This document shows positions 7,000-45,167 of a DNA stretch of 55,823 bases, in pieces. Location: contig NC_068983.1 of NCBI RefSeq assembly GCF_001194135.2, forward strand, positions 161,635,818-161,691,640. The letters are read 5' to 3'. Both the position numbers and the translations under genes were made by a program. Source of the DNA: Octopus bimaculoides (lineage: Eukaryota). Numbering within the stretch: the first letter of the stretch is position 1; each line of letters opens with the position of its first letter. The notes under the pieces are model-generated. The model saw nothing but the letters and a program-made list of their open reading frames with translations. It had not been told where the DNA came from and searched no databases.

Positions 7000-7546
7000 A
7001 TGTTTCTGAGATGAGGAATTATGTACATTATTTACAATGGATAGATAGGTATCCTCATCTTGTTTGTTACCACATTTGGCTGATGTACTCTCCAACCTTC
7101 ATCAGGTGTTCTGGTGGAATTTCGAACCCAACCCTTTATTTGACTATTGGGGTACTCTGTTCTCATTCTTGCTGATGTTATTTTTTTGTAGATATCAATT
7201 TCCAAGTCCCTGTCTTGGATTGAACTCAGTATCCGAGGGTTAGTAACGCGAGCTCTTATCCACTTCATATAGCTGCCATATAGCGTAGTGGATAAGAGTG
7301 TAGGCTACTAGCCTTCGGATTCTGAGTTCAATCTGAACCGGGGACTTGGAAAATACCTACAAAAAAAAAACATCAGCAAAAAGAATACCTTAGGAATGAG
7401 AACAGAATACCCCATTAGTGAAATAAAGGGTTGGGTTTGAAATTCCACCAGACCACCTGATGAAGGCTGGAGAGTACATCAGCCAAAGCATTGTGGTAAC
7501 AATAAACAAGGTGAGGACACTTGTCCGGCCATTGTAAATAATGTAC
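7000..7546. mobile_element. Palindromic (head-to-head) dimer of tRNA-headed, Penelope-associated hammerhead element, locus A
   Basis: GTACATTATTTACAATGG (7023-7040) mirrored at 7529-7546; arms are reverse complements about a centre near 7270; CTGATGA motif on each arm. Confidence 0.75.
7452..7497 (+). ncRNA. Degenerate minimal hammerhead ribozyme motif
   Basis: ACCAC-CUGAUGA-A-GGCUG-loop-CAGCC-AAAG-CAUU-GUGGU; stems I and II pair, but the GAAA core is mutated. Confidence 0.5.
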
Positions 7547-7560
7547 GCTGTGTGTGTGTG

Positions 7561-7561
<1 letters not shown>

Positions 7562-7601
<40 letters not shown>
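7562..7601. repeat. (TA)n microsatellite at gap edge
   Basis: Direct. Confidence 0.95.
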
Positions 7602-8365
7602 NNNNNNNNNNNNNNNNNNNNNNNNNNNNNNNNNNNNNNNNNNNNNNNNNNNNNNNNNNNNNNNNNNNNNNNNNNNNNNNNNNNNNNNNNNNNNNNNNNN
7701 NNNNNNNNNNNNNNNNNNNNNNNNNNNNNNNNNNNNNNNNNNNNNNNNNNNNNNNNNNNNNNNNNNNNNNNNNNNNNNNNNNNNNNNNNNNNNNNNNNNN
7801 NNNNNNNNNNNNNNNNNNNNNNNNNNNNNNNNNNNNNNNNNNNNNNNNNNNNNNNNNNNNNNNNNNNNNNNNNNNNNNNNNNNNNNNNNNNNNNNNNNNN
7901 NNNNNNNNNNNNNNNNNNNNNNNNNNNNNNNNNNNNNNNNNNNNNNNNNNNNNNNNNNNNNNNNNNNNNNNNNNNNNNNNNNNNNNNNNNNNNNNNNNNN
8001 NNNNNNNNNNNNNNNNNNNNNNNNNNNNNNNNNNNNNNNNNNNNNNNNNNNNNNNNNNNNNNNNNNNNNNNNNNNNNNNNNNNNNNNNNNNNNNNNNNNN
8101 NNNNNNNNNNNNNNNNNNNNNNNNNNNNNNNNNNNNNNNNNNNNNNNNNNNNNNNNNNNNNNNNNNNNNNNNNNNNNNNNNNNNNNNNNNNNNNNNNNNN
8201 NNNNNNNNNNNNNNNNNNNNNNNNNNNNNNNNNNNNNNNNNNNNNNNNNNNNNNNNNNNNNNNNNNNNNNNNNNNNNNNNNNNNNNNNNNNNNNNNNNNN
8301 NNNNNNNNNNNNNNNNNNNNNNNNNNNNNNNNNNNNNNNNNNNNNNNNNNNNNNNNNNNNNNNNN

Positions 8366-8578
8366 AGCTTATGTATGTCCTCAGCAGTTACAGCCCATGT
8401 TTCACTGCCATGTAGCATGGTTGTTCGTACGCATGCGTCATACAGTCTGCCTTTTACTCTGAGTGAGAGTCCCTTTGTCGCCAGCAGGGGTAAGAGCTCT
8501 CTAAACTTTGCCCAGGCTATTCTTATTCTAGCAGCTACACTTTCAGCGCACCCACCCCCACTACTAACTTGTTCGCCC
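8366..8578 (-). mobile_element. RTE-clade LINE reverse-transcriptase fragment (post-catalytic region)
   Basis: Stop-free GEQVSSGGGCAESVAARIRIAWAKFRELLPLLATKGLSLRVKGRLYDACVRTTMLHGSETW, matching the RTE motif ARIxxAWxxF...KGRLYxxxVxxxxLxGSETW; runs into a gap. Confidence 0.85.
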
Positions 8579-8604
8579 ACACACACACCAGTTTCACATA
8601 ACCA

Positions 8605-9002
8605 GCCCCAGCCCATTCAAAAGTACCTTGGATCGTAGGGCGACATGCTGTGCTTGGGACTTATTGAGTCAAGTACATCAACATCAAAATGAAAATCAAA
8701 TGGAAATTGTAGTTGTGATCCCCATGCTAGTGGCATGTAAAGAGCACCATCCGAATGTAGCCGATGCCAGCGCCGCCTTGACTGGCTTCTGTGCCGGTGG
8801 CATGTAAAATGCGCCAACCGATCGTGGCCATTGCCAGCACCCATTACACATGGAGTGGTTGACGTTAGGAAGGGTATCCAACTGTGGAAACACTGCCAGA
8901 TCAGACTGGAGCCTGGTGCAGCCTCCTGGCTTCCCAGACCCCAGTCAAACCGTCCAACCCATGCCAGCATGGAAAACAGACGTTAGACGATGATGATGAT
9001 GA
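8605..9002 (+). mobile_element. RTE LINE 3' end including degenerate ORF terminus and (GAT)n tail
   Basis: CGACATGCTGTGCTTG...TTGAGTCAAG ORF-end homologue followed by the shared 3'UTR. Confidence 0.75.
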
Positions 9003-9023
9003 CATACATATCCCCAAGGTGAG

Positions 9024-9269
9024 GGAGTGGAGCAGGTAAAATTAAGGCTACATATGTTTCCTAGTTAGCAGACTTGATGATGTAATAATTACTCAATGAG
9101 GGGTATTTAGTTAAGATGCCTTAAGTATATGAAGGTTTTGGTGAGCTAATCATATAATTAAGGTATCTCCGGCCAGGTGAGTTGCTAGCTGAGCACCTCT
9201 TGTTGAGTAATTATTACATCAGAAGATCTAAGAAATATATGTAACCTGGGTTTTACCTGTTGCCACTCT
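9024..9269. mobile_element. MITE-like inverted repeat element
   Basis: CAGGTAAAA (9033) / TTTTACCTG (9251); GATGTAATAATTACTCAA / TTGAGTAATTATTACATC. Confidence 0.6.
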
Positions 9270-9534
9270 TTCAATTTAGATTTTTATTTGCATTCATAGT
9301 GACTGAAGCTGATAAAGGTGAACTATAAAAACATTTTTTAGCTTATTGAGCTTCGATGTAGCACAGGAACCAGTCGGGTTGGTCTAGTATCAATCACATT
9401 AGGATAGTGCTTTTTATGTGCCACCGGCACGGGAGCCAGTCAGGAGGTCACTGGCATTGGCCACATTCGGATGTGAGTTGAGGGAAACTTTCAGTTTGGT
9501 TATTGTTTTTATTACAAGTGTATCTACTTTAATG

Positions 9535-9795
9535 TGAAGGTGTGTGGTTTAGTGGTAAGGGCATTTCACTCAAGATTGTAAGGTCATGAGTTCAATTCCT
9601 GGTGATGTGTTGTGTCCTTCAACAAGATACTTTATTTCACTTTGCTCCAGTCCACACAGCTGGCAAAAATGAGTAGTACCAGTAATTCAAAGGGCCAGCC
9701 TTGTCACACTCTGTAAACTATATTAATTTCATGAGCAAGCTGTTCCGTTGATCACATCAACTGGGACCCTCGTCGTTGTAACTGACAAAGTGCTC
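9535..9795 (+). mobile_element. tRNA-derived SINE family 2
   Basis: TAGTGGTAAG A box, GAGTTCAATTCC B box, core GTGTCCTT...CAAGATACTTTATTTCAC...CCAGTCCAC; repeated at 31.5, 34.6, 36.8, 45.5 and 46.0 kb. Confidence 0.75.
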
Positions 9796-10140
9796 TTTTT
9801 TATATATTTTAATGGTGGGGTTGAAATGGTCAACAGGACCTTGTATTCTACATTACCTTAGTTCATATAGCTGACTAGAGGAGATATCAATCCCTTTTTA
9901 GGAAACGTTTTAATAAAATTAAATCTCTTCGTGATATATTCCTCTCGGTGTAAAAGTCAATCATTAACTTGGTTTCTAGCATTTGTTTGTGTTGTATAAA
10001 TCTGGTTTCTGTCTTTGGCACCAGTTCACATATTTTTTGAAAGAGAAAATATTCAATTAACCTGACTAATCCCCTGCTTCTAGTCCTTGACATTTTCTTG
10101 GCCTTCACTGAATTTGAACCCAGAATGTAGAGAAATATCA

Positions 10141-10270
10141 CCATCATCATCATCATCATCGTTTAGCGTCCGCTTTCCATGCTAGCATGGGTTGGATGAT
10201 TTGACTGAGGACTGGTGAACCAGATGGCTACACCAGGCTCCAATCTGATTTGGCAGAATTTCTACAGCTG
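10141..10270 (-). mobile_element. RTE LINE 3' end
   Basis: (CAT)n followed by reverse complement of the shared 3'UTR. Confidence 0.75.
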
Positions 10271-10453
10271 GATGCCCTTCCTAATGCCATACTTAAAAAT
10301 GCACAGCATTTTGTCTAGCTTCTACTGTTTCTATCTTTTACCATTCTTAACTGTAGAATCTTAATGGTTAAAGTATACCAAGAAGTCTGAGATAAAATTC
10401 CATGCTTTTAGTTGTATCTTCTAAATGACTTTTTTTTAAATTTTATTACAGCT

Positions 10454-11083
10454 ATGGCATCAGGAATAACTGAAGAACAACAGGCCATACTGAATGATCT
10501 CTACCTAAGACAACTTAACTTGCCAGATGCACTTACATTGGATAATATCATTGAGAACTTTTCTATGCTAAATCTAACATCTCTTTCAGATGTCTGTAAG
10601 GTGTGCTACAGTAATTCTACCTCTGTTCACTACCGGCCATGCTGCAATTTCCTGGTCTGTTCTTCGTGCTTAACACGTTACCTGTCTGAGAAAGTTCAGT
10701 TAGGAATTGTTAATATAAAATGTCTTAACATTTGTGAGTGCTACATCAACCAAGACGATATCATGGCTTACTTACCATCATCTTTGAAAGAGAAATTCAA
10801 CAAGTTTCTGGTTGACGCTAATAAGGATCCTTGTGTTAAAACCTGTCCAAACTGTTGTTCCATTATCTCAATTGACAAATCTCAAATGAAGCATAAAAAA
10901 TGCAAAAAAGGTCTGAAGGTTGTTTGTTCCACTTGTTCAACTGCAATATGTTTCCCCTGTCAAGCACAATGGCACGAAGGAATTACTTGCAAACAATTTC
11001 AGAAAGGAGACAAAATGGTCTCAATTTGGGCTAAAAATTACCAAAATGGTCAGCTTAATGCACAACAATGTCCAAAATGCAAG
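10454..11083 (+). CDS. RNF217: RBR-type E3 ubiquitin ligase RNF217-like, coding exon 1 (RING1, IBR, start of RING2); 210 codons
   Basis: Acceptor AG at 10450-10451, ATG at 10454, donor GT at 11084 (phase 0). CKVC..PCC..CSSC..C (RING1); CPNC..CSTC..CFPC..WHEGITC (IBR); CPKCK. Confidence 0.92.
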
Positions 11084-11123
11084 GTAGGAAATCTTTGATT
11101 TTTATTATTGACTTCTTCATTGT

Positions 11124-12975: not shown

Positions 12976-13323
12976 ACTCCTACTGTATATATTTTTTTAT
13001 TATTTTCATAATTTGTATATATTTATTTTATTATAAATGCAAAACAACACTACAGAGTTTAAACTTATGTCGAGGAATCGACATAAGTTTAAATAATAAA
13101 CCGCAATAGGTGAATTGCGATATGGCGAAGGATTACTGTATTTTTAATCCCTTCTGCAGAGAGCAGAATGAGAACAGTGTACACCCATGGATCAAATAAA
13201 GAGTTAGGTTTGAAATTCTAATACAACAAACGAGTTTAACCCAAGACACCTGAAAAAGGCTGGAGCACATAATAGACAAAACATAGCGAAAGCAACAATC
13301 AAGATGGAGTCACCACACAATTA

Positions 13324-13600
13324 CATCATCATCATCATCTTTTAACGTCCGCTTTCCATGCTAGCATGGGTTGGACGATTTGACTGAGGTCTGGCGAACC
13401 AGATGGGTACACCAGGCTCCAATTTGATTTGGCAGAGTTTCTACAGCTGGATGCCCTTCCTAACGCCAGCCACTTGGAGAGTGTAGTGGGTGCTCTTACA
13501 TGCCACCGGCACAAAGGCCAGTCAGGCAGTACTGGCAACAGCCACGCTCAAAATGATGTATTTTATGTGCCACCTGCACAGGAGCCAGTCCAGCGGTGTA
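13324..13600 (-). mobile_element. RTE LINE 3' end
   Basis: (CAT)n plus shared 3'UTR on the minus strand. Confidence 0.75.
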
Positions 13601-14334: not shown

Positions 14335-14690
14335 TTTTTACTTGTTTCAATCATTAGACTGCGGCCATTCTGGGGCACTGCCTTGAAGAATTTTAATTGA
14401 CCAGATCAACCCCAGTACTTATTCTATCGGTTTCTTTTGCCAAACTGCTAAGTTGTCAAAACCTAAACTCACCAACACTGGTTGTCAAGTGGTGGTGGGA
14501 GAGGGGGGAAACAAACATAGACACAAAGATGTACACACACATATATACAACAGGCTTCTTTCAATTTCCATCTATCAAATCCACACACAAGGCTTTGGTT
14601 GGTGTGAGGCTATAGTAGATACTTGCCCAAGGTGCCACGCAGTGAAACTCATCCCGGAACCATGTAGCTGGAAAGCAAATAGGATTACCA
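14335..14690 (-). mobile_element. SINE family 1 (degenerate)
   Basis: Homologous to 12545-12975. Confidence 0.7.
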
Positions 14691-14736: not shown

Positions 14737-15495
14737 GGCACAGGAGTGGCTGTGTGGTAAGTAGCTTGCTTACCAGCCACATGGTTCCAGGTTCAGTCCC
14801 ACTGCGTGGCACCTTGGGCAGGTGTTTTCTAATATAGCCTGACCAAGGCCTTGTGAATGGATTTGGTAGATGGAAACTGAAAGAAGCCCATCATATATAT
14901 GTATGTATATATANNNNNNNNNNNNNNNNNNNNNNNNNNNNNNNNNNNNNNNNNNNNNNNNNNNNNNNNNNNNNNNNNNNNNNNNNNNNNNNNNNNNNNN
15001 NNNNNNNNNNNNNNNNNNNNNNNNNNNNNNNNNNNNNNNNNNNNNNNNNNNNNNNNNNNNNNNNNNNNNNNNNNNNNNNNNNNNNNNNNNNNNNNNNNNN
15101 NNNNNNNNNNNNNNNNNNNNNNNNNNNNNNNNNNNNNNNNNNNNNNNNNNNNNNNNNNNNNNNNNNNNNNNNNNNNNNNNNNNNNNNNNNNNNNNNNNNN
15201 NNNNNNNNNNNNNNNNNNNNNNNNNNNNNNNNNNNNNNNNNNNNNNNNNNNNNNNNNNNNNNNNNNNNNNNNNNNNNNNNNNNNNNCCCCCCCCCCCCCC
15301 CCACACACACACACACAACATCGCTTGACAACTGATGCTGGTGTGTTTACATCCCCGTAACTTAGCAGTTTGACATAAGAGACCGATAGAATAAGTACTA
15401 GGCTTACAAAGAAATAAGTCCTGGAGTCGATTTCCTTGACTAAAGTCAGAGCTCCAGCATGGCCACAGTCAAAATGACTGAAACAAGAAAAAGAA
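14737..15495 (+). mobile_element. SINE family 1 spanning an assembly gap
   Basis: Head CACAGGAGTGGCTGTGTGGTAAG and 3' end CAGTCAAAATGACTGAAACAAG flank the N-run. Confidence 0.75.
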
Positions 15496-18449: not shown

Positions 18450-18887
18450 CCAGCCCATTTAAAAAGTACTTTTGAATGGTCGGATGACATATCATGCTGG
18501 AGGAGACCTATTGAGTCAAGTAAAATCACAATCACAATGAAGTGGAAATTGTAGTTGTGGCCGATGCCAGTGCCAAGTGACTGGCTCCTATGCTGGTGGC
18601 ATGTAAAAAGCACCATCTGAATGTGGTCAGTGCTAATACCCCCTGCCCCGACCAGCAGCATGTAAAAAGCACCATCCGAACGTGGCCGATGCCAGTGCCA
18701 CTGGCATGTAAAAAACACCAACTACACTCTCAGTGGTTGGCGTTAGGAAAGGCATCCAATTGTAGAAACTTTACCAGATCAGATTGGAGCCTGGTGCAGC
18801 CTCCTGGCTTGCCAGTCCCCATTCAAACCATCCAACCCATGCCACCATAGAAAACCGACATTAAACGATGATGATGATGATGATGAT
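18450..18887 (+). mobile_element. RTE LINE 3' end
   Basis: ORF-end homologue GAGGAGACCTATTGAGTCAAGTAA, 3'UTR, (GAT)n. Confidence 0.75.
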
Positions 18888-19027
18888 TCTATGCTGGCAT
18901 GAGTTGGATGGTTCGACAAAAACTGGCAAGTCACAAGGCTGCACCAAGATCTGCTGTCTGTTTTGGCATGGTTTCTATGATTGCTTGCCCTTCCTAATGC
19001 CAGCCACTTTACAGAGTATACTGGGTG

Positions 19028-19032
<5 letters not shown>
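18888..19032 (-). mobile_element. RTE LINE 3' end, tail-to-tail with previous copy
   Basis: Reverse complement of the shared 3'UTR begins immediately after the (GAT)n. Confidence 0.65.
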
Positions 19033-21056: not shown

Positions 21057-21921
21057 ACAAGACAACCATTCCACATTTGTTGCCTTATTCAAATGGAATA
21101 TTGTGTCTGGTCATAGAATTGGAAACATTTCAATATTTTTTTTTCTTTGCTTCTGAAGTCATTTTATTTTCTCTTCCTTTCTATTTATGAATCCTCGTTC
21201 CTGACTCAACATCCCCATGGATGTTCACTATTTTTATAAAATAATTTATATTTTATCCATCTTAATGCGGGTTCCCCATTTATTCTGGGGTAAGGAATTT
21301 TTTACCAATGCTGAACTTAAAAGATTATGATTCTACATTAATATTAATAAATTCCTAATTTTATTTCTCTTCTGAGACTGAGCAAAATACCACTCCCAAC
21401 ATATGAATCAGCTCTTCTTATTCCTTTTTAAAATATTTCTCTAGGCCTGAAAGCTCTATTGTAGCTTATTGTTTTCGGTACAGTTGACTTTTTGGTGCCT
21501 TCTAACAAAATGAAGTAATTTCAAGTTACCAAACTTATAGGAGCTGCTAAAATATTGAGGTTTATCTTCTTTAATAAATCCATTTCTAAACCAAGTTAAA
21601 TCTTTAAGGAACTGTTCCTCATAAACCAGTCCATATCCAATATACTCCCAGCCAATAACATTTTTTGCATTTTCTGTCCAAATGAAAGTATCCATCAAAA
21701 TCTATTTTGTTTTCGTATCATTTTGTTGGACAAATTGTCCAATACTTTCCAACCAGTAAAAGACATTCAAATATTTTATATTAAATGTTATAGAAAAGTT
21801 AATAATCCAGAACTCGCCTTCTTAAAAAGAACCCTTCTAATAATGTTTCAGTTTGAGATAGATACATCATCGGAACATTATTTACATTTGACGGATATTT
21901 GTCCTCATCTTGTTTGTTGGT

Positions 21922-21967
21922 AACACAACGTTTCGGCTGATATACCCTCCAGCCATCATCAGGTGTC
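21922..21967 (-). ncRNA. Minimal type I hammerhead ribozyme motif (best preserved copy)
   Basis: GACAC-CUGAUGA-U-GGCUG-GAGGGUAUAU-CAGCC-GAAA-CGUU-GUGUU: complete core, 5-bp stems I and II, palindromic AACGUU stem III. Confidence 0.7.
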
Positions 21968-22079
21968 TTGGGGGAAATTTCAAACCTGGGTTCTCATTCC
22001 TGAGGTATTTTTCGATGTTATTATTATTCAGGTCACTGCCTGAAATCGAAAAATACCTTAGGATTCGAAATTTCCCCAA

Positions 22080-22125
22080 GACACCTGATGAAGGCCAGAG
22101 GGTATATCAGCCGAAACATTGTGTT
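22080..22125 (+). ncRNA. Hammerhead motif, partly decayed
   Basis: GACAC-CUGAUGA-A-GGCCA..CAGCC-GAAA-CAUU-GUGUU; stem II and stem III substitutions. Confidence 0.5.
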
Positions 22126-24999
22126 AACAACAAACAAGATGAGAACAAATATCCATTGAATGTAAATAATGTACATAATTCCTCATCTTGTAAATATAGA
22201 ACTGTAACATCATAGGAAGTTGAGGTATGACTGGGATAAATCTTTAAGCAAGGATATTGACAAAGCAGCAGCTCTTAACATTTTCAGGATGACCCAATGG
22301 TTGATTGTGATGTTTAGAATTTCAGTTTGGTTTCTTCTCGACTTGAACTTTCAACTCTTCCTTTTATTCATATCATCATTAAGTCTGAATTTTGTTTATT
22401 AATTTATATGAGAGAGAGATGGCAGAAAATGGAATTAATGACATTCTTTATTCACTAGAATTGTTTCTCCACATTCTCACACCTGTAGTTCATAGGTGAG
22501 ATGTTGATTTTAGAAAATGAGATTCACAACATTATTTATCATTTGGCTATTTATATAAACTCTAGATACAGAATTCCTGATGTATATCCAATTGCGGGAG
22601 TATTTCTACTGTATGATGACATCAAATAGCCAATAACTGTGGACAAGCTTTGCATAGCATTCTATAGGGCTTTTGCCTCAATGTATATAATCTATATATA
22701 TTCTCACCACCCACAAAATCCCTCAAAGGCATGTCCTGACACTTCTTTGCCATCTCTCTCACCCTGCTTTCCCTTCCAACTGGGTAATCCATGTATCTAT
22801 AGCAAGACCCCTATCTCTGTCCCTTTATATCTTTAACCTCTCAACTGGCACAAAGCTGCCCCACTAATACTTCTCCCCACTCCCATTTCAAGAGTTGGCA
22901 TTTACATAAGGGAGAAAGAAAGCCATCACCACAACAAGCTATTACAGTTTTCAGTGTTTGATTCATTTCATTTTTCCCCCCTCTTATCTTTCACTGCTAC
23001 CCCCTCAACTAACACTTGTCACAACTTACTCTGCCATGTCTTCCTTTCTCCCTTGCCATTCCGTGTCATTTCCACCATCACAATAACAATAGACGTCTAC
23101 AGTTCTCAGTTTTTCACTTGCAAAACCTGTAAAATTTCCACAAATTTCACTGGTTGAAATTATTCCTGCTTTCAGAACAATTGCTTTGTGTCAAAGACAA
23201 TCTGATTGTTTGAAAACAAGAGAACAACTGCCTTCTACAGTTCTTTCTGCCTCAATAAGCACAGCATTTGACCTACCTTGTCCCCAGCAGAACAAAATAC
23301 CTGTCCTGCTCTTGCTAGAAATTGATCTCGTTTTGCTGTCTCAAATCTCTCAAGAAGTGGAAATAATTTTTATAAATGAAGAATTTATCTTAAGCATTGG
23401 CAGTTGACACAGATGTATAAATCATACGCACAAATGTATATCTTTTATGTTTTTTTTCTTTATATACCCTTATATATGTCTTTGTTCAAATACATACCAC
23501 TGACCAATTTCTCTTGCTTTTCTTAATTCATTTCATTTCTGCAAACTACCTTTGACATAAATGTCTTCTACCTTGTGTGTGTGTGTTGTACATATGTTTT
23601 CACCATATATATTGACTATAGAAAATAGTTTCATATTGAGGCATAAAAAAAAGACAAAAAAATGGGTATTAGTACCCATTTTTCTATTTTGGCTTTACAT
23701 GCCCCAATATTAGGCAATTTTCTATTGTCAACATGTACAGTACAAAATTTTCACTCGTTTGAGAAGTTAAGGAATTGAACAGGTAAAGCACAGAATATGA
23801 TTGTTTCATGCTAAACCACGAGTTGTATGGTGACGGTCAACTTATCAAAATTTCCTTTGATTTCAATATGAGACAAAGTGTGTATCTTACAATGTTAATA
23901 AACTCTTTTATTCGTATTTTGTCATCTAAACTAGCTACATACATTCTTGAAGCTTACTAACTTCCTACACTTGGATTGTACTTGCCTATTACTTTATATA
24001 TATATATATATATATATACTACCTAAGCCAACTGATATAGATGAAAAAAGCTCTTAAATGACACTGAAAATTAGCCCTGGGCCCCAACAATAGTTGTGGC
24101 CTAAACTACTAGGCCCTAGCTCTACCACAATATATGGTTTCAGCTCCTCTGTTTAGCTTGGCCCCAACCAAACAGATGTAGCCACAAACCCCCAGACTGA
24201 TAGTCTAGGCCTCAGCTTCACCAGCCTAAGCCCTCCCTTGGTCTTCATAACAGCCAAACCTACATACATGCACTTATATATGCATGCATACATACATACA
24301 CATATGTATATATACACACATGCATATATCAATATATGTATATGCCTCTTAACCCTTATACCTTTGAATGTATACACATACATGCATACCAACATACATA
24401 CACATATACACAAACATCTAACGAACAATTCTCCATTTATATTTTTAAAAAAACAAGTGGAAATGGTATCCAGATGACTGCTTTATATTCAGGACCAAAA
24501 AAAAAAGACTTAGGAATCTTTCACTCACTTTTAAGTAATTTACATACCTCAATAAAATTCACCACGGAACAACACACAAAGGAATTACCATTTTTAGATA
24601 TACTTCTAATTAAAGAAAATAACACCATAAAAATAGATTTCTCCTACAAACCTACAGACACACACCAATATTTGAACTTTCATTCCTTCCTCCCATACCA
24701 AAAGAAACATACCCTTTAATATGGCAAAATGAATTTGCACTATAATAATAGATGCAGAAGTAAAAGATCACAGGAATTAGAAATATTTCTAAAAAAAAAA
24801 ACACAAGAATAGACAAGTAGTTTAATTAACACAGCAATCACCAAAGCGAAAAACATCACAACTACAGACCTCAGAGGAAAATGAACACACAAGCATTATT
24901 TTTGTCATCATCCACAACCCAAGAAATTACGACATCATCAATATTGCAAAAAGATACCTTCCAATTCTTCAACAATCATCAAGAATGAACAAATTAATA

Positions 25000-25348
25000 A
25001 CACATTATTTACATTTGACAGACATGTCCTCATCTTGTTTGTTGTTAACATGTTTCAGTTGTTATACCCTCCAGCCTTCATCAGGTGTCTTGGGGAAATT
25101 GCAAACCTGGGTTCTCATTCCTAAGGTATTTTTCAATGTTATTAGTGATTAAGAGTACTAACCCCAAGATTCTGAGTTTGATTCCAGGCAGTGACCTGAA
25201 TAATAATAATAATATCAAAAAATACCTTAGGAATGAGAACCCAGGTTCGAAATTTCCCCAAGACACCTGAAGAAGGCTGGAGGGTATATCAGCCGAAACA
25301 TTGTGTTTCGTCAAATATAAATAATATACATAATTCCTCATCTCTTAA
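25000..25348. mobile_element. Palindromic hammerhead element, locus C
   Basis: Truncated minus arm about 25000-25140; plus arm with tRNA-like head remnant (GAGTTTGATTCC) through the family 3' end. Confidence 0.8.
25262..25307 (+). ncRNA. Hammerhead motif with CUGAAGA core
   Basis: GACAC-CUGAAGA-A-GGCUG-loop-CAGCC-GAAA-CAUU-GUGUU; the change falls at the variable N7 position; stem III has G>A. Confidence 0.55.
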
Positions 25349-26285
25349 ATATAGAACTAAATTAAAAACAGATTCAAAAATGATTTATAGCAGACATCAA
25401 ACACCCAACCTAAAAAGAAACCAAGGTTCAAGCACCATTGATATAGATGACTTCTGCCATCCGCTGACATAGACAATAATGGACCCAGCTCCATCATCAT
25501 GTATGATCTAAACTCTCTACTTATATTAAAATATAGAAACTAGCTCCATAAAATAAGGATGGCAGAAATGCTCTTCTGACAACTTTTGAACCAACTCCAC
25601 CAATATAGTTCACCAATCCCCCAAAAGATGGCCTAAGGCTTCCACTATCATAGGCAATCTAGCCCCTACTTGCACTTAAGCTCTTGAGTGTCATTGACAA
25701 CCTGGTCCCCAGCTCCATAGCTATATATAACTTAAGCCCGCAACTAACAGTGATAAATTTAGCCTCAGCTCCAGCTGTTAAAGATGACCCGAGCCCTTCC
25801 CTATCATTGTTATCATGGGCCCTAGATCCATGATAGATAAATGAGCAAAGACCTTCACCTCAATTTCATATTCAAAGCCGCAGCTCCAATGACATTGACA
25901 GCCCAAGCCTTCCTCCGATGTTATCAACAAGGTATTTGCACCACCAACACAGATATGGATAGCATTGTAAATAGTCTTTGTAACTATACCATGTCTCAAA
26001 GACAGAGAGTGTCTTGTAGACATTTTGGGGCAGCTGCTGTTGATGTGGATATCTTCCAGAACTGACATTTCCTATCCCAACATGGGAGATTTGTTAGTAT
26101 CTTTGTCTCTTATCAGGTATTTAGTAGCTATCTTTTGTTCCTGGTTAGTAAAGGCATATTCCAGGTGTGATGTAATGTATCTATTGCAGGGCCAGGAGAG
26201 ATTACTCTTCTTGTCAATACTGTTATTCTCTAGTTTTGCATTGCTTTCTGCTGCTATGATGCTTGTTTCTCCTCGAAGTTCCTGT

Positions 26286-27140: not shown

Positions 27141-27435
27141 TGAGGTCGTTGCCAGTGCCGCTGGACTGGTTCCCGTGCAGGTGGCACGTAAAAAACACCA
27201 TTTTGAGCATGGCCGTTGCCAGTACCGCCTGACTGGCCCTCGTGCCCGTGGCACGTAAAAGCACCCACTACACTCTCGGAGTGGTTGGCGTTAGGAAGGG
27301 CATCCACCTGTAGAAACTCTGCCAGATCAAATTGGAGCCTGGTGCAGCCTTCTGGCTCGCCAGCCCTCAGTCAAATTGTCCAACCCATGCCAGCATGGAA
27401 AGCGGATGTTAAATGATGATGATGATGATGATGAT
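27141..27435 (+). mobile_element. RTE LINE 3' end
   Basis: Shared 3'UTR and (GAT)n. Confidence 0.8.
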
Positions 27436-27714: not shown

Positions 27715-27904
27715 ATATGTTATAATTTACAGCAAACTGTAAAAGGTTGTCATTATAGTACTCGGAGTTTTGAATGTCAGAGCGAAGAGCTATGATACAT
27801 TTAATGATGTTACATTAAATGTATTGTAGGTCTTCGCTCTGACATTTGAAACTCTGAGTACTATAACGACAACCTCCTACTGTTTGTTCTAAATTATAAC
27901 ATAT
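27715..27904. mobile_element. 190-bp foldback hairpin (MITE-like)
   Basis: ATATGTTATAATTTA / TAAATTATAACATAT ends; AATGTCAGAGCGAAGA / TCTTCGCTCTGACATT. Confidence 0.8.
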
Positions 27905-28162
27905 AAATAATCCTCTAGTTCTCTAATATCGAAAAAGTTTAGAATGGTACAAAGAAAACCGTTGGAAAACAGTTTATAGCAGAGACTCCAGCTAAGAAGG
28001 TCTGAAGAGGGAATTGTAATTCCGAAATATCATCAGACTATAGATAACCAAATGACAACAGGTATATAGTCCATTTTTTGTTTTATAGTGATTGTTGTAC
28101 CATTCTAAACTTTTTATTCTTTGCAAACAATACACAATGCTTCAAGCGAACTACAATACTTT

Positions 28163-29882: not shown

Positions 29883-30053
29883 GAAAGATAAATTTTATTC
29901 AACGCATAGATACTGAACAGTATAGATATAAAGGATAAAATCCTTTTTTCTTTTTGGCCGCCGACAAATTTTTCTGCTTTTAAAAAGGAAAAAGGATTTA
30001 TCCTTTATATCTATACTGTTCAGTATCTATGCATTGAATAAAATTTATCTTTC
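29883..30053. repeat. Intronic inverted repeat, near-perfect arms of about 60 bp
   Basis: GAAAGATAAATTTTATTCAA(C/T)GCATAGATACTGAACAGTATAGATATAAAGGATAAA mirrored. Confidence 0.9.
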
Positions 30054-36390: not shown

Positions 36391-36499
36391 ATCTACTTTT
36401 CATTAATTTACTCCTGAATTTTAAATGTAGGGCCTGTGAAGACTGGTAGGTTTATGTGGAGAAAAGAATTATTGCAATAAGAGGTTGATTACATTATGT

Positions 36500-36737
36500 A
36501 CATCATTTACATTTGACGAATATTTGTCCTCATCTTGTTTATTGCTAACACGTTTCGGCTGATATACCCTCCAGCCTTCATCAGGTGTCTTGGGGAAATT
36601 TCGAACCTGGGTTCTCATTCCTGAGGTATTTTTCGATATTATTATTATTCAGGTCACTGCTTGGAATCGAACTCAGAATCTTGGGGTTAGTAGCCTGCAC
36701 TCTTAACCACTACGCCATATGCCTGTGGGCATATGGC
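36500..36737 (-). mobile_element. tRNA-headed hammerhead element with intact Pol III boxes, locus D
   Basis: A box TGGCGTAGTGG (36707-36717 rc), B box GAGTTCGATTCC (36663-36674 rc), (AAT)n spacer, hammerhead; palindromic head junction GCCATATGC-CTGTGG-GCATATGGC. Confidence 0.8.
36547..36589 (-). ncRNA. Hammerhead motif with intact core and 3-nt deletion at the stem III/I junction
   Basis: GACAC-CUGAUGA-A-GGCUG-loop-CAGCC-GAAA-C-GUGUU. Confidence 0.55.
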
Positions 36738-39700
36738 AAGACAACTGAGGTTGATTAGTGCACATCACTCCATAAGGAGCATAAGACCAGTTACTTGGTT
36801 TCTTGGTGCATATATTCCTCCTCCTGGACAGGATGCTGATCCATCGCAGGATTATTCCTTTTTTTCCAGCTGAGTGGACTGGAGTAACGTGAAATGAAGT
36901 GTTTTGCTCAAGAACCCAACACATCACCCAGTTCAGGAATTGAAACTACAGTCTTATGACGATGAGTCCAGCTACCTAGCCACTAAGCCATGTGCCTCCA
37001 CAATAAGTAGAAATAGCTTTAATTTGTTGAGCCGTACAAAGTCTTTGAATGGAAGAAACGAAGATATGTCTTGGAATTCTTTTTCTAATGGGAGATGTGC
37101 AACTTCAAATTGAAGGAGACACCTGAGGCACAAGTTCAGCCATGATAAGGAAACCAATGCTCAGGAATAAATATCTTGTAAATATAAATGAAAACATCTA
37201 TGTGTAATAAACTTACCTGTGTTCAACCTACCTGGGCAGGTCAAAGTGATAAAGACAACAGGTGAAAAAATTAACAACAAATGTAAAAACCACATTCACA
37301 ATATACACCAATGATTGTTATACTGTATCAGCAAATTTCATCCAAATTCATGCAAAAATTTACATTTCTATGATTTGTTCCTTTTACACTGACCCAACTG
37401 CCATTTCATCAAAACTGATTCTAACAGAATTGGGAGATTTAAAGAAAGTAGCACAAAACTTAAGAGTTTGGTTTAGGAAAAAATAACTTCTGCTTTGTGT
37501 AGGATTATTTTGAGGTGGGTTCTTTCCAGCTAAAGTTTTACCATTTTCAAAGCAAGTGTTCCAGATTAAGTTAATCAATAATCAGACAACATTTTTGAGT
37601 TTTACACAGCATGAGGAATTGCAGAACATTGAACAACTTCCTTCAACTGTTGGAGAGCGATGAATAAAGATTGACATGACTTGAATGATAGATCCAAGTT
37701 TGCAAGAATTGTGATCAGGAATTTGTAAACTACACATTGTTTATTTTGAATATGTATTGCTTCCTGAATTTATCTCTCAATTAAGATGTGTCCTACTTCA
37801 TTCTCCAACTATTCCACTTCTATATAAATACCCAGTTAATTGGCCAATGAAGAGACAGAAAGAAGCATGTGAAAAAACATTAGAATGACTAATATTAACC
37901 AACATGAGGGGGGAGAGGGGGAGGAAGAGTTCAATGGAAGTTTGTTCAGCAGAAGTGGAGGAACTCAGTTGAGAGAGAGAAAGAGAGAGACCGTATTTAC
38001 AAGGGAAACCTATTCAAGAAAAGACGTTAAATGAATAGGGATTATTTGTCAAGTAGACACACCTGGAATTACCTGATCAAAGTTAAAAAAAGAAACTTTA
38101 ATCCAGTAATTTATCACTGATATAAATGATTTGGGTCAAGACAGAATAAAATAAATTATATATTCTAAATGTGTACTGTATAACTTTTTTCATCACATGC
38201 ACACATACGCATACACACACATACAGTTAATGCATATCACATATATACATAAATATCATCATCGTTTCAGTATCCAATTTTCTATGCTTGCATGGGTCGA
38301 ATGAGATTCAATGAAGCAGATTTTGAGGGACTGAATGCCCTTCCCCTTGTCAACCCTCAAAGTAAGGTAATACTTTTTCATGGCCAGACATATTTTCACA
38401 GAAGACAGGAAAAGAAGGACACTGTTTGTGTAATGGAGATGTTTTTTTACAATAATGGCTCCATGTCAAAATGAGGGGGACACAAAAATACACCTCCATA
38501 CACACACTATAAAGTAATAAATTAAATTTTTGTATAAACAACTCTAAATAGAACTAATTGCAGAAGAATTTACAATTTGGTTTTTTGAAAATGTTTACAA
38601 AATGTAAGAGGAGACAACTAAAATTTGTTCCCTTGAATATTTGAAGGAAGGAATAATTCTAAAGTAAGGTAAAATGGAACCATACACAACAACGCCATTA
38701 TTAATAAAAGGAAAAAAACTATACCAAAAATGTCTCCTCTCTTCATTTTTCACTCTTCAATAAGAATTTTCAACAAGAAACAGAAAAAAAAAAACTTAGA
38801 AGTGATTCCCTCCCTTTAAGCACTCTCCACTGCCAATATGTTCCAGCTTCCAGCAAACAGAGCAATTCTATTATATTCATAATTATGAATTGAGAAACAT
38901 TTGGTGGGTTAAAATACAGATATAACAAAGAAAGCTTGGAGTATTATTGCTTTTGTTGATAGCAGAGATTCTCTGTCTCGTTACGAAAGAAAAGTCGATG
39001 GTAAGGAAGACAGATGAGAAAGACAAGAAGCAAAAGAATGTTAAAATGGCAAAGAAAGAGAAGTTTTAAGAAGATGTAAGAAGAAATGAGTGTAAATGAG
39101 GATGAACGCAAGTAATTTGACCAGGTAACCAAGTATTATCAGGGTTCAGGTGAGTTTAATGTTAAGAAAATGTTAATAGTGGAGGTCAATTAGAAGAAAA
39201 AAATCTCAAGAAACCAAGAATTGTTTGAAGTAAAGTTGAATATTTGATCATCCAGGGTGTAAAATAGGGAGGGACACAACTATAGTTAAGTATATTTATT
39301 TATTCAAGAGATGTAGCATGGAAAAGAGATCACTGTTTTGATATGGAGTGACAGCACTAAGCAGTGAGGTGTATAAATATAAACTTGTTACCAGTTCAGA
39401 TCTGTTTGAGGCATAAACCTGTAAAAAAAAGCCATTCACTGTGTTTTTGCCATGGAGAAAATTTCTCTCTACACACAAATAGGTGTGAGTACAGTGAGTC
39501 AGTTTGCAGCATCACCTGACCAGACTTTGGGATGCATGCATTTTGGAGTGGATATCTTCTCTACAGCAACAGAGACCAGAAAGACAGACGCTGGGAACTG
39601 ACATGAGGGACAGGTCCCTCTTGTGTTTTGGTCCACACTGTAAAGTGGTTGGCGTTTGAAAGGGCATCCAGCTGTAAGAACCATGCCAAAACTGACCTCG

Positions 39701-41070: not shown

Positions 41071-43420
41071 TTTTCTACTAAACGCTTGAAATTTACAAGT
41101 CCTTTTAGAGTTAGCTGCTCTTAACTTTAATTGGTCTTCTTTGAATAAGGAATAACTAATTATTGAGTGAAGCAGATTAAGGCAAGCATAACAACAGTGG
41201 AAAGGTATAAAATACTGGCTGTCATTAAGTTTAAAACTCAGCACAGACTCTATGACCACTTCGTTACTACTACTACTACTACTACTACATAAAGTAACAA
41301 CAAAAATGCTATATATATATAACACTGTGCTAAACTGGCATAATAAATAAAATATTGAAAATATTTGTAAATCCATGCTGTTATTAGACTGCAAAACAAA
41401 AGTAAGGCAGGTGATAAATAAATAAAAAGAAATAATGTAAACCAAATAATGAAAGCAAAATATAAGTTTCCTAGATTAAAAATGCCACTTGCTTCAACAC
41501 AAAACTGACTGAATTAAAACCTTTTCTGAAATAAAAACATTTAAATTATTTTAAAGCCATTTTGTTTCCCCATATTCTAAACCAAAAACCAAAAAGTTTT
41601 CTCTAAAAGTTAAAATACTGCTTGTCCATGCAGAAAATAAAATATCAAAAGGCAGCTATAAAAACAACGAAAATGGCTGAGGAGAGAGAAAGGAAAGATA
41701 ACATGCTAACACAATGAGGATCGCACATACTTCCAAAAGTTCAGAGTATAAATATAATCCAGCTGGCTGCAGGGAAAGAAAAAACAAACAAACAGTCTTG
41801 TTATTTACATAAAGTTAATGATTATTTCTATAGTGATTTCATTAAGATAAAAAAAATTTACTATAATCATAAAAGTGAGTCTATCGTTAATCTGTAGAGA
41901 AGTTAAAGATATTTTATAAATTTGGTCATCCCATACTCTATCACTGGCACTACTGCAATATATGTTGACACTGAAGTAAGATGAAGGAGGTTTCAGCGGA
42001 GTGGCTCCTGAATGTAATTCTTCCCAGAGAGACAAAATATGTTCCACCACAGGCAAGACAATGTCTCTTACTTGGTTAACACTGTGAAAGCTGGAAAAAT
42101 AAAACTCCAACACACTTCACTTCCAGTAGCAGACATATCAAGGACAATCTCTCTCTCTCCTTGTGTGTGTAGGCACTGAAGTGGCTGTGTGGTTAAATGC
42201 CTGCATCCCAACCACATGGTTCCAGATTCAGTCTCACTGCATAGCACCTTGGGCAAGAGTCTTCTATTATAACCTTAGGCCATCTAAAGCCTTGTGAGGG
42301 GATTTGCTAGGCAGAAACTGAAAGTAGTTTGTCATGTGTGCAAAATTGTGGGAATATACGGTGACAGATCCTGCTCATATTTAACCAACAGAAATCTATC
42401 TCTCAGCTAACAACATTATCAATATTTTCCTTTTGCTATATGGGGATTAAATCAGAAAATACTTGAACATAGCCTCAAAGTTAATGACTTTATTTATCTT
42501 TAATCAAAAAAAAAATCCTTGCTTCTAAACCTTATATTTTATTTCAGGATTGTTCATTTTAAGCTTCCCTAAGCATAACACTTTGGATGTTAATGAGAGA
42601 AAATACTGACAGCAAGAATATGATCAGTAAATTGAGAGAAATTATAAAGTGTCAGGGTAAGTGTTTGGAAATATTATTTTGTCTATGTTCTGAGTTCAAA
42701 TCACAGCAGGGTCACTTTCCAGGATTGAGAAAATAAGCTTTACTAATATTTTGGAATCAAGTCAATTAAGATAGCCCCTATTAGAATTAACTTTTTTTCC
42801 TACACCAGCATCCGGCTAAACTAAATCCTGATACTAATTTCAGTGAGAAATTTAGTATAAATTTGTGAATAACTAAGCAGCACTTCTCTTTGATATATAT
42901 CCGATGTTATTTGTAGAGTAAAACCACACAGTGATGAAATCAGGTTTGTTGAAATTCGATATTTAATAGCAATGAGATATTTTACTGGCATGCAGCGACC
43001 AGTCTTCTACATTGTTGAGTTCCAATAGAACGAAATCAAGTGATATGGACATCCTGACACCCATGACAGACAAATTTCAATTGGCTATGATCTATATGTG
43101 TGCTTTTATGCATCAAGTGCCTACAGGTTCTTTCAAAGCTAATAACACAGTATTCGGTATTCTAACAAGGTATCCATGTTAAGTTGGATACAAAGATTAC
43201 CTTTTGATATTAATACCATTTCTTCTGTTGCAAATAATTAACTGAAGTTTAAGTAACTGAGCATCACTGCAAATGATGATAAAGAGATGCCTAATGATCT
43301 CTCATTTACAACTAAGTTAATTTGTCATACAAACTTAAAATCCTTTATCACTTTACAGGGTTCCCAGATTTCTTCATCTTTATACTTTGGGAAAGACAGA
43401 CAGAAAATCAAAACACTCAC

Positions 43421-43519
43421 CTCACTGAAGGTTCGACTCATATTTTGATTGGAAATAATTGGTGACGTATTGTCTCTGTTCAAGTAATCTCCCCTTGTAT
43501 AATGCATTCGGTCTTGAGG
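43421..43519 (-). CDS. SNX17: SNX17 coding exon (C-terminal linker)
   Basis: CCCTTCTAG|CCT...GAG|GTGAGT; 99 nt, phase 0/0; PQDRMHYTRGDYLNRDNTSPIISNQNMSRTFSE. Confidence 0.8.
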
Positions 43520-44451
43520 CTAGAAGGGGAACAAAAGATATTACATCTTAAAACTTGAACATGCAGCATTATATTCTCTATTAAAACAACAACACACAAC
43601 ATGCATTGTGCAAAGCCACGGGGGATTTTTGTGCAGCTTTTCATAAATCTACAAATAATACCCATCCTGAAGAAAATGAAAGGATAACTTGCTAAAAACA
43701 ATGAAGAATAAAGGCATTCTATGGATGAATATAAATTTGAAATTTCTTCTCCTCTATCCCTTAGTCAACACGTGTTATTAATTAAAGGCAAAAAATACTA
43801 AAGAGTGCATCTACATAGGCTTTAATTGCACTTGTAAAGCAAACACCTTCTAATCCATTTGATAAAGGAAAAATATTATTTTAGTATTTTGTATTTGGTT
43901 AACAAGATTCTTGGTGTGAATTTGTGTGTTGAAATGAATTTTGAAGTGTATTGGGAAGGTAGAGGGGAAATCACTAAGTTACTGATAAGGTCGCGAATAG
44001 TGATGAAAGAACTTTGACTAATAAACAACGGATTAGTTAGTTGGTTAGATATTTAACCAATTGACTAACAATAAAGAAGTGGAACTGAACCTGTGTGTGT
44101 GTGTGTCAAATTGGCATAATGCTCCTCCCAAGACACATCAAAACTATTTTAGTAGTTTTAACAATTCAACAAATAAACAATCTATGGATTCTAAAGGCCA
44201 CAACACAGTCAATTTATTTCCCTTTGGTGGGGTAGTAATTCCAGTTAAAAAGTAATATAGAAGAAAGTGGGTATTTAATCTTGTCACAGAAAATCTCTTT
44301 AGTCCTATTACTTAGAGTCCATGCTGTAAAACAGTTGATTACAAGAAGAGCATCCAACCATTGGAACCATACCAAAACCAACTGAACCATATCAATGAGA
44401 TAAGGTCTCTGCATGTAACATCAGTTTTCATATCAAAGAGGACAGTAATTA

Positions 44452-44665
44452 TTTTCTACTCTAGGCAGAAGGCCTGAAATTTTTTGGGGAGGGGGCAAAT
44501 CGATTAGATCGATCCGGTATGCAACTGGTACTTAATTTATCGACCTCGAAAGGATGAGAGGGAAAGTCGACCTCGGCGGAATTTGAACTCAGAACATAAA
44601 GATAGACAAAATACCACTAAGTGTTTCGCCCGGTGTGCTAACGTTTCTGCCAGCTTGCTACCTTA
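44452..44665 (-). mobile_element. SINE family 3, full length
   Basis: Aligns end to end with 52177-52400 (reverse complement). Confidence 0.8.
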
Positions 44666-44820
44666 GAGGACAGTAATTCTGAGTAAGAACTGATGCAAAT
44701 TAGACAGGAGTATTTAGTCAAAACTCTCTAGTACCAACTGGCCTGATACAGTGTACCCAGTCCACATTGTAAGACACAGACAAGATTAAAGTTGGCAGGG
44801 GGAAAATGGGTCAGTTACTC

Positions 44821-44882
44821 TGTGTGTGTGTGTGTGTGTGTGTGCGTGTGCGTGTGCGTGTGCGTGTGCGTGTGTGTGTGTG
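44821..44882. repeat. (TG)n/(TGCGTG)n microsatellite
   Basis: Direct. Confidence 0.95.
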
Positions 44883-44957
44883 CAAGATGACTAATGAATG
44901 ATGAGATGCTGAGACTAATTCAGCCAATGCAAACACGAACAAACAGACTTGATGATA

Positions 44958-45167
44958 CATTATTTACATTTGGCGGATGTTTGTCCTCATCTTGTTTGTT
45001 GTTAACACAATGTTTCAACTGATATACCCTCCAGCCTTCATCAGGTGTCTTGGGGAAATTTCAAACCTGGGTTCTCGTTCCTAAGGTATTTTTCCATCAA
45101 ATATCCTTCAAATGTAAATAATATAAATAATGTACATAATTCCTCATCTCTTAAATATAGAACTGTA
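44958..45167. mobile_element. Collapsed palindromic hammerhead element, locus E
   Basis: Minus arm with hammerhead (45004-45049) fused at about 45095 to the 3' end of a plus arm. Confidence 0.75.

Follow-up and report, generated by a model that had tools for sequence, protein, structure and literature searches.

Introduction

The minimal hammerhead ribozymes (min-HHRs) in the pseudo-long terminal repeats (pLTRs) of Penelope-like elements (PLEs) are defined by a conserved core, a short helix I (4-5 bp), an unpaired nucleotide separating A9 from G10.1, a G10.1-C11.1 pair, a long helix II, the absence of loop 3 and a palindromic 15.2-16.2 sequence. Because of this palindrome helix III forms only between two copies, and min-HHRs cleave only as dimers and poorly (Cervera & de la Pena 2014). 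Short interspersed elements (SINEs) are classed by the long interspersed element (LINE) whose tail they copy. Octopus genomes are exceptionally rich in SINEs, which constitute about 11% of the Octopus vulgaris genome and form the largest component of the repeatome in O. bimaculoides, the majority being still listed as "unclassified". Three tRNA-derived octopus families (OK, OR1 and OR2) were described in 1994 (Ohshima & Okada 1994). This paper discusses a stretch of 55,823 nucleotides from Octopus bimaculoides (RefSeq assembly GCF_001194135.2, contig NC_068983.1, positions 161,635,818 to 161,691,640 of the forward strand), hereafter called the window, in whose own numbering all positions are given. 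The window contains a family of short repeats which combine a tRNA-like promoter for RNA polymerase III (Pol III) with a min-HHR of the PLE kind, and this family is probably a SINE mobilised by a PLE.

PLE insertions are strongly 5'-truncated, have an inverted 5'-truncated copy adjacent to them and often bear a tail of 30-40 bp at one end only (Craig et al. 2021). With PAc, a purified PLE protein, both strands of an AT-rich target are cleaved and extended, reverse transcription is initiated internally, at two neighbouring sites that lie as far apart as the tail is long, and the required RNA lies directly downstream of the hammerhead. Moreover, hammerhead mutants insert normally in vitro, cleavage of the RNA needs the protein, and no in vivo reads end at the site of the hammerhead ribozyme (HHR) (Frangieh et al. 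2024). These two descriptions are the background against which the octopus family is considered below.

Repeat Family and Consensus

The window has 37% G + C, numerous microsatellites and eight runs of N. Copies of the family were searched for in the whole window with blastn, using three copies as query, and with nhmmer, using a profile made from all arms; both methods gave the same ten pieces and none extra, that is, five loci (L1 to L5) and one relic (Table 1). An initial annotation, made by a model from the letters of the sequence, had listed five loci with eight hammerhead motifs and a relic, both orientations at four loci and a palindromic head junction at the fifth, all of which was confirmed. 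Its unit of about 240 nt stands as a repeat family, the length being corrected to 229 nt (261 nt when the 32-nt tail is included), and its first locus, which it began at 7023, is real and reaches 6996. No copy contains or borders on a gap; the closest gap (7602-8365) is 51 nt past L1b and beyond (GT)n(AT)n, so the uncertainty caused by the gaps is limited to the distances between loci and to the right-hand target-site duplication (TSD) of L1. The full head is present only in L1a, L1b and L4. Both arms of L1 have in common the 27-nt insert of an older subfamily, and only at L1 are the two arms of a locus closer to each other than to other copies, a comparison that is uninformative for the young subfamily.

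Table 1. Positions of the repeat copies, their hammerhead motifs and target-site duplications, the PLE remnant and the sister loci. Positions are those of the window unless a contig is named.
Feature	Position	Strand	Description
L1a	6996..7266	-	full-length, older subfamily, 27-nt insert, head present, long (tailed) 3' end
L1a HHR	~7072-7110	-	G12 gone, 7 nt deleted
L1b	7270..7550	+	full-length, head-to-head with L1a; short 3' end (..AAATAATGTAC) against (GT)n
L1b HHR	7452-7497	+	helix I = ACCAC/GUGGU; G12 gone
Relic	13166..13309	+	single decayed copy, 5'-truncated, L1-type subfamily; motif at 13245
L2 TSD	left 21864..21870, right 22207-22213	.	ACATCAT, 7 bp
L2a	21871..22036	-	consensus 63-227; short end + 4 extra nt
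L2a HHR	21922-21967	-	sole fully intact motif among 8
L2b	22037..22206	+	consensus ~72-261, 13-nt internal deletion, long (tailed) end
L2b HHR	22080-22125	+	helix II mismatch; ACGU to ACAU
PLE remnant	24455..25005	+	degraded PLE reverse transcriptase/helix-turn-helix frame, 5'-truncated, frame-shifted; decayed remains past 25370; L3 inside
L3 TSD	left 24991..24997, right 25359-25365	.	AAATTAA, 7 bp
L3a	24998..25148	-	consensus ~80-229, short end
L3a HHR	25047-25089	-	helix II 3' strand mutated, 3 nt deleted
L3b	25149..25358	+	consensus 14-258; without A box; 27-nt deletion 3' of HHR; long (tailed) end
L3b HHR	25262-25307	+	intact core; ACGU to ACAU
L4 TSD	left 36481..36491, right 36747-36757	.	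GAGGTTGATTA, 11 bp
L4	36492..36723	-	full-length single copy, A box TGGCGTAGTGG and B box GAGTTCGATTC; 3' end 5 nt beyond short site
L4 HHR	36547-36589	-	intact core; GUU (3 nt) deleted
Inverted head copy	36728..36737	+	GGCATATGGC, 10 nt; 4 nt from L4 head; followed by 9 unassigned nt, then the TSD
L5 TSD	left 44948..44956, right 45170-45178	.	CTTGATGAT, 9 bp
L5a	44957..45097	-	consensus ~88-227; short end directly on TSD
L5a HHR	45004-45049	-	C11.1 = U; ACGU to ACAU
L5b	45098..45169	+	consensus ~200-261 only, long (tailed) end, without HHR
Sister locus L007	4700-5379 (ENA ERZ21867824)
Sister locus L010	10078-10513 (ENA ERZ21867824)
Sister locus L012	7-235 (ENA ERZ21867824)

The consensus begins with a tRNA-like head (1-74) carrying the A box TGGCGTAGTGG at 7 and the B box GAGTTCGATTC at 50, and continues with (AAT)n and a spacer (75-134), the hammerhead GACAC CUGAUGA A GGCUGG-AGGGUAUA-UCAGCC GAAAC GUU GUGUU (135-180), an AC-rich stretch terminating in ..AAAUAAUGUAC (181-229) and the 32-nt extension AUAAUUCCUCAUCUCUUAAAUAUAGAACUGUA (230-261). 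The order of the parts, a min-HHR, an AC-rich stretch and then two 3' ends, is like that of PAc. In the predicted fold AGAUGAGGA of the body pairs with UCCUCAUCU of the extension into a 3' stem-loop of 9 bp, in which case the shorter 3' end would fall within the loop of this hairpin.

A scan for the A-box/B-box pattern, with 4 matches in the window (2 of them in the family) against 0.61 expected, bears out the view of the family as a non-autonomous, SINE-like retroelement that has A and B boxes. The head has the promoter of SINE2 elements, namely an A box TRGCNNAGTGG and a B box GGTTCGANNCC in tRNA-like spacing, the B box with one mismatch, and the copies are dispersed, 5'-truncated and flanked by TSDs as those of SINE2 elements are. 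A poly(A) or microsatellite tail is absent from the family, whereas another SINE of the same window (SINE-C) has one. The sense strand is free of TTTT and the antisense strand has a T5 run; the absence of TTTT would fit, as weak evidence, read-through by Pol III in the sense direction.

Hammerhead Motif

Eight arms carry GACAC-CUGANGA-N-GGCUGG-loop-UCAGCC-GAAAC-GUU-GUGUU or a decayed version of it, and L5b has none. The whole hammerhead core (C3 U4 G5 A6 N7 G8 A9, G12 A13 A14, A15.1-U16.1 and an H17 that is not G) is present in the consensus and in L2a, where it reads CUGAUGA..GAAAC-GUU with U as H17. An extra nucleotide (A or U) follows A9 in all eight arms and in the sister family described below, helix II starts with G10.1-C11.1 and extends to 6 bp (GGCUGG/UCAGCC), helix I is short with its 5 bp (GACAC/GUGUU, or ACCAC/GUGGU in L1b), and loop 3 is absent. 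The palindromic ACGU is kept in L2a and, with a 3-nt deletion, in L4; its CpG is decayed elsewhere, giving ACAU or GCAU in L2b, L3b, L5a and L1b. Further losses are those of 3 nt in the GUU region of L4 and L3a and the change of C11.1 to U in L3a and L5a.

All published hallmarks of the PLE min-HHR are thus found in the consensus and in L2a, and the assignment to the minimal type I hammerheads of the PLE kind, which had been made from the letters of the sequence, holds. The facts given along with it (an extra base after A9, a palindromic ACGU without loop 3 and dependence on dimers) agree with Cervera & de la Pena (2014). The motif lies, however, not in a pLTR but in a 261-nt non-coding element with no reverse transcriptase (RT)/GIY-YIG open reading frame (ORF) attached. 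Self-cleavage would take place after GUU, a site predicted from the motif. A strict descriptor of the min-HHR (CUGANGA with or without a bulge, then a helix II of 4 bp or more closed by G...C, and GAAA) gave 4 matches in the window, 3 in the family and 1 at an unrelated site, against 0.035 expected in shuffles; a scan of metagenome contigs of the JGI for the HHR core gave no match.

A second min-HHR-like motif, unrelated to the family, occurs at 28002-28027 (+). It reads ggtCUGAAGAgGGAAUUGUAAUUCCGAAAuauc, has a palindromic AUAU and lies within an inverted repeat (27940 / 28095).

Twin Insertions

Head-to-head twins are found at four of the five loci (L1, L2, L3 and L5), and L4 is a complete single copy. 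Every twin has a 3' end of the element on either outer side, and the inner junctions differ from locus to locus, lying at consensus 63 / ~72 in L2, ~80 / 14 in L3 and ~88 / ~200 in L5; at L1 both arms are almost full length. One or both heads are absent from three of the four twins (L2, L3 and L5). TSDs enclose the entire twin at L2, L3 and L5 and the single copy at L4, and the chance of a repeat of at least the same length is 7e-4 for the 11 bp of L4, 4e-3 for the 9 bp of L5 and 0.04 each for the 7 bp of L2 and of L3; L1 is uninformative in this respect, since it lies in a microsatellite. Because the TSDs surround whole twins, the twins arise at insertion, and the palindromes look like insertion by-products which are mostly dead on arrival.

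In each of the four twins one arm ends at consensus 227-229 and the other at 258-261, so that the 32-nt tail is one-sided; the two ends lie about 52-54 and 83-86 nt beyond the predicted cleavage site. The same signature recurs at the three sister loci. The arms of one locus differ by 11-17% and have private indels. Twins are enriched in the family (4 of 5 loci) relative to two other SINE families of the window (1 of about 28 loci; Fisher p = 6e-4), with one head-to-head pair in about 9 loci of SINE-B and none in about 19 loci of SINE-C. In addition, Logan contigs of a related octopod, which come from two independent sequencing runs, contain a twin of the family. The anatomy of the octopus insertions matches the published signature of PLEs, and the mobilisation by PLEs that had been proposed for the family gains support from the whole-twin TSDs, the bimodal 3' ends 32 nt apart and the one-sided tail (cf. 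Craig et al. 2021; Frangieh et al. 2024).

Sister Family

To find relatives of the family, the pseudo-ORF of the 3' module served as query in an exhaustive search of proteins. This gave 31 representative sequences, one group of which (TPEEGRRTYRPKRCGNNNKDEDNSPKTLNDKNHQASSQKFRQ) has a period of 43 residues. At least two of the sequences, P0021 and P0023, are not relatives of the SINE; P0023 is a bacterial repeat protein and a false lead. The idea that the 3' module is itself a coding ORF was rejected, because a nucleotide identity of 70-80% would, in the absence of selection, already lead to the amino-acid identity of about 45% seen between the families, and because only open copies can be returned when proteins are searched.

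The sister family is represented by three loci of ENA ERZ21867824 (L007, L010 and L012; Table 1), which encode three members of the group with the 43-residue period. Its head, as read by eye, contains A/B-box-like motifs and is accompanied by a body 5' of the HHR unit; the unit has 129 nt and is present in 2.6-2.7 tandem copies of 98% identity, with the motif ACAC CUGAAGA A GGCCGG..UCGGCC GAAAC GUU GUG. Each locus consists of an inverted 5'-truncated copy with the short end and a forward copy or array which ends about 33 nt further on, and TSDs of 12 bp at L010 and 8 bp at L007 flank the whole unit.

One sister unit can be aligned end-to-end with the 3' module of octopus (132 nt; consensus 130-261), the identity being 80-84% over the HHR and the AC-rich part. 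Of the cells in helices I and II and the 3' stem, 86.8% are paired in the octopus/sister alignment, compared with 26-46% when the partners are slid, the structure used in this comparison being derived from one of the aligned sequences. Two-sided changes of pairs are found in helix II (U-A vs C-G, split 4:4), in the 3' stem (G-C vs A-U, split 3:4) and, in L1b only, in helix I (A-U vs C-G).

Proposed Mobilization and Alternative Explanations

A PLE-dependent SINE would be propagated as follows. Pol III would transcribe full-length copies, and the RT-GIY-YIG protein of an autonomous PLE would bind the uncleaved RNA via its 3' module. The endonuclease would cut both strands of an AT-rich target with a stagger of 7-12 bp, which is the length of the observed TSDs, and reverse transcription would begin internally at either of two sites 32 nt apart, as the observed bimodal ends and one-sided tail suggest. 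The cDNAs primed by both target strands, usually halting early, would join head-to-head to give twins, by analogy with PAc in vitro. Cleavage after GUU would split the promoter and the HHR from the 3' module, so a full-length copy must come from uncleaved RNA. It is most likely that the HHR is kept mainly as part of the RNA recognised by the PLE enzyme, with at most a dimer- or protein-dependent cleavage.

The window contains a PLE remnant, into which L3 is inserted (Table 1). Its frame is 38-44% identical to ORFs in which a tandem PLE encodes RVT_1, HTH_animal and GIY-YIG domains, and its homologues come from unrelated metagenomes; Pfam did not recognise the stitched fragment, whose assignment to the PLEs rests on the identity given above. 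Since the fragment has no sequence in common with the SINE, it is an insertion target and not the partner. No PLE-like ORF was found in L007, L010 or L012.

A number of points weigh against the PLE-dependent reading. The sample is small, with 5 loci in the window and 4 elsewhere. Neither the PLE fragment of the window nor the external tandem PLE L006 shows similarity to the SINE, and an autonomous PLE sharing the 3' module, a search for which the initial annotation had recommended, was not found among these two and L007, L010 and L012. At least one hammerhead element is lost in seven of the eight arms, and G12 is absent from both arms of L1, by which catalysis may be dispensable or a parallel CpG change may be indicated. 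Retention of the HHR beyond neutral decay was not seen in the inserted copies: the six young arms have 0.048 substitutions per site in the HHR, 0.052 in the spacer and 0.051 in the head. The inserted copies decay neutrally, which is expected for dead copies and is silent on master copies. The Rfam hammerhead models, which had also been recommended, gave no match in the window at the gathering score, nor at E<=10 in the stretches over L2/L3, L4 and L1. They missed the intact tandem sister units too, because the models need a closed helix III, which is absent here, and the miss is read as a limit of the models and not as evidence against a min-HHR. Furthermore, the minimum free energy z-score of the 3' module is only -1.55, and the covariation of helix II (C-G to U-A) can also come from two CpG decays. 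As for the head, ARAGORN found no tRNA in it at the default or the 70% threshold, the latter being sufficient for a tRNA-Ser call in SINE-B, and the Rfam tRNA model had no match at E<=10 in the scanned stretches; of the "tRNA-headed" structure claimed before, the box motifs stand and the tRNA fold does not. A tRNA origin of the head is plausible, being demonstrated only as A and B boxes, and the head may resemble tRNA-Thr.

The initial annotation had regarded the palindrome as the functional unit, whose divergent Pol III promoters would give two RNAs that pair via ACGU into a dimeric hammerhead. L1 with its two full heads back to back fits this design, ACGU is self-complementary, published min-HHRs need dimers, and RNAcofold predicts a dimer that is 4 kcal/mol more stable than two monomers. 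Nevertheless, the heads missing from L2, L3 and L5 mean that a divergent-promoter dimer cannot be the general design, and the junctions of the twins lie at varying truncation points; the full-length L4 is single, the only two-headed twin (L1) has no G12 in either arm, whole-twin TSDs place the origin of the palindromes at insertion, and the RNAs of any two copies could dimerise, which makes the palindrome unnecessary. The elements are not built as palindromes, and we give little credence to the dimer scheme. Quite improbable, too, is a PLE-dependent family with the hammerhead in catalytic use, in which read-through or tandem RNAs would self-cleave and circularise like retrozymes and the SINE form would be a side branch. 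The window of 56 kb has no tandem array of the family, HHR mutants do not impair insertion by PAc in vitro, no in vivo reads end at the HHR site and min-HHRs cleave poorly; on the other side, the sister family forms 129-nt tandem arrays with intact HHRs, its unit length equals that of the SINE 3' module (consensus 130-261), and animal retrozymes have been proposed as PLE dependants.

Octopus genomes have many LINE-dependent SINEs, SINE-B of the window also has one head-to-head pair and no curated RNA model recognises the motif, so the family might be an ordinary LINE-dependent tRNA SINE with inversions from L1-style twin priming or nested insertions and with an HHR match by chance. This is unlikely, since the family lacks the poly(A) or microsatellite tail seen in SINE-C, twin priming yields non-overlapping RNA segments whereas both arms here have the same 3' end, a one-sided 32-nt tail is not a LINE feature, the enrichment of twins (4/5 vs 1/28) sets the family apart, and the motif, of which 0.035 is expected per window, is conserved with compensated pairs in the sister family. 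An assembly artefact, that is, chimeric or collapsed joins of a high-copy repeat near gaps, has hardly any probability: arms within a locus are 11-17% different with private indels, the flanks are unique with matching TSDs, no gap touches a copy, and the same architecture is seen in the Logan contigs of two runs and in three ERZ21867824 contigs whose names suggest long reads, even though the window is a gapped short-read scaffold and PLE structures are known to cause assembly trouble (Craig et al. 2021). The twins also resemble elements with terminal inverted repeats and TSDs, and true hairpin repeats like miniature inverted-repeat transposable elements (MITEs) occur in the window (e.g., 27715-27904 and 29883-30053). 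A MITE-like DNA transposon, whose arms would be terminal inverted repeats and whose TSDs would be made by a transposase, is nevertheless very improbable in view of TSDs that vary from 7 to 11 bp, inner junctions that differ per locus, unequal arms (141 vs 72 nt in L5), the extra 32 nt at one end, the one-armed L4 and relic, and the Pol III boxes in the head. Mobilisation by a PLE is accordingly retained as the probable explanation in what follows.

Other Features of the Window

The twins and copies of the family have side effects on annotation. When the twins at 21934-22113 and 25113-25238 were compared with Rfam, they scored as MIR9486 (58.8 bits) and mir-2300 (38.5 bits), both below the gathering score; such microRNA-like matches were the only ones obtained from Rfam, and they arise because twins are long hairpins. 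The twins are a likely source of false microRNA calls, and possibly of real hairpin RNA. In P0005 ("dystrobrevin beta isoform X1" of O. bimaculoides, GCA_001194135.2), residues ~9-33 (..EGWRVYQPKCCVNNKQDEDKYPSK) are the translated hammerhead region of the SINE, so a copy has been exonised or mis-annotated as the first exon. A peptide translated from the repeat has 88% identity to an O. bimaculoides UniRef entry. Annotators should therefore beware of twin hairpins mis-scored as microRNA precursors and of at least one gene model with an exonised copy.

Among other repeats, SINE-B has 10 copies in the window, with a head called tRNA-Ser by ARAGORN at the 70% threshold; two copies form a head-to-head pair (14541-14678 (-) / 14745-14900 (+)) with a 66-nt spacer, and the remaining copies are single. 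SINE-C (18695-19032 and about 20 further copies, e.g., 13330-13560 and 27195-27424) ends in (GAT)n, and one tail-to-tail pair has a common microsatellite. The kind of partner that SINE-C has is suggested by an RTE-type LINE with a (TGA)n end in the external locus L010. A palindrome of about 255 bp at 950-1204 has arms of telomere-type repeats, with (TTAGGG)n facing (CCCTAA)n, and is framed by an inverted repeat of about 33 nt (cagattaacacccgcacgatcttcactagggtg). At 8366-8616 (-) lies the C-terminal portion of the reverse transcriptase of a LINE (..LYDACVRTTMLHGSETWAVT..), which is cut short by the gap 7602-8365. Finally, a long open exon at 10412-11098 (+) encodes an IBR/RING-between-RING-like protein, with 84% identity to a protein encoded in the Logan contigs of what is probably a related octopod (runs SRR11869384-91).

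Comparison with Known Systems

The repeat itself is very probably already in repeat libraries, possibly as OK, OR1 or OR2. In the literature searched, neither an octopus SINE nor any tRNA-type SINE was connected with a PLE-type hammerhead or with the insertion signature of PLEs. The observations on the octopus and sister families can be joined, tentatively and with somewhat more doubt than confidence, into one picture: they would represent an unrecognised class of SINEs, made of a tRNA-type Pol III promoter and one retrozyme-like PLE unit, in octopus and at least one other animal; the octopus family would be one of those behind the large SINE expansion of its lineage, the min-HHR and the stem-loop would be the handle recognised by the PLE RT-endonuclease, and the obligatory twins with short and long ends would record a dimeric enzyme priming both strands. 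If this is true, PLE retrotransposition and the part that the hammerhead plays in it could be dissected on the 130-nt module, which would be the smallest natural substrate for the purpose. A PLE-dependent family would also alter the reading of octopus SINE expansions, and the element offers a short, naturally amplified and non-coding template for asking what makes PLEs retain a crippled hammerhead, at which point reverse transcription begins and by what route inverted copies originate.

Among the closest systems are the PLEs themselves. With the min-HHRs of PLE pLTRs (Cervera & de la Pena 2014; Lunse et al. 2017; for PAc, Frangieh et al. 2024) the octopus motif shares CUGANGA, the bulged nucleotide after A9, G10.1-C11.1, a short helix I, the lack of loop 3 and a palindromic 15.1-16.1. 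With PAc the family shares RT start sites tens of nt 3' of the HHR, a one-sided tail of 30-40 nt, an inverted 5'-truncated partner and AT-rich targets. Unlike PLEs, the octopus element has no RT/GIY-YIG ORF and its 5' end is a tRNA-like Pol III promoter, not a pLTR; unlike the schistosome PLE families, whose helix II has 7-8 bp, it has a helix II of 6 bp. The element is likened to PLEs by its motif and insertion pattern, not by homology to pLTR sequences.

Sm-alpha and Sj-alpha of schistosomes are also short, non-coding, dispersed and SINE-like and carry a type I hammerhead (Ferbeyre et al. 1998; Laha et al. 2000). The HHR of Sm-alpha is canonical and efficient, with loop-loop contacts and a helix III, whereas that of octopus is the minimal PLE variant. 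Sm-alpha has no sequence similarity to the octopus element. It presumably also has Pol III boxes, and we know of no report of a PLE-type twin/tail insertion signature for it.

The metazoan non-LTR retrozymes are likewise non-autonomous HHR units, of 130-400 nt, with a proposed dependence on PLEs (Cervera & de la Pena 2020; Li, Clavereau & Pollet 2026 preprint), and the sister family is a 129-nt tandem array of the retrozyme kind. Retrozymes are tandem, however, and are said to be promoterless, while the octopus element is dispersed, single or inverted, with its own A/B-box head and an HHR without helix III; no head-to-tail copies of the family occur in the window.

L1 twin priming is similar in that the second target strand primes a second cDNA, giving an inverted segment within one TSD-flanked insertion, but its segments are different parts of the RNA, whereas the octopus arms both start at 3' sites of the element and overlap almost fully. 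Finally, the octopus element resembles tRNA SINEs with LINE tails (SINE2/tRNA; OK, OR1 and OR2) in its A/B-box head, body, borrowed 3' module, TSDs, 5' truncation and high copy number, and it differs from these classical SINEs in that its 3' module is of the PLE type, without an A-rich or microsatellite tail, and its insertions are mostly inverted twins.

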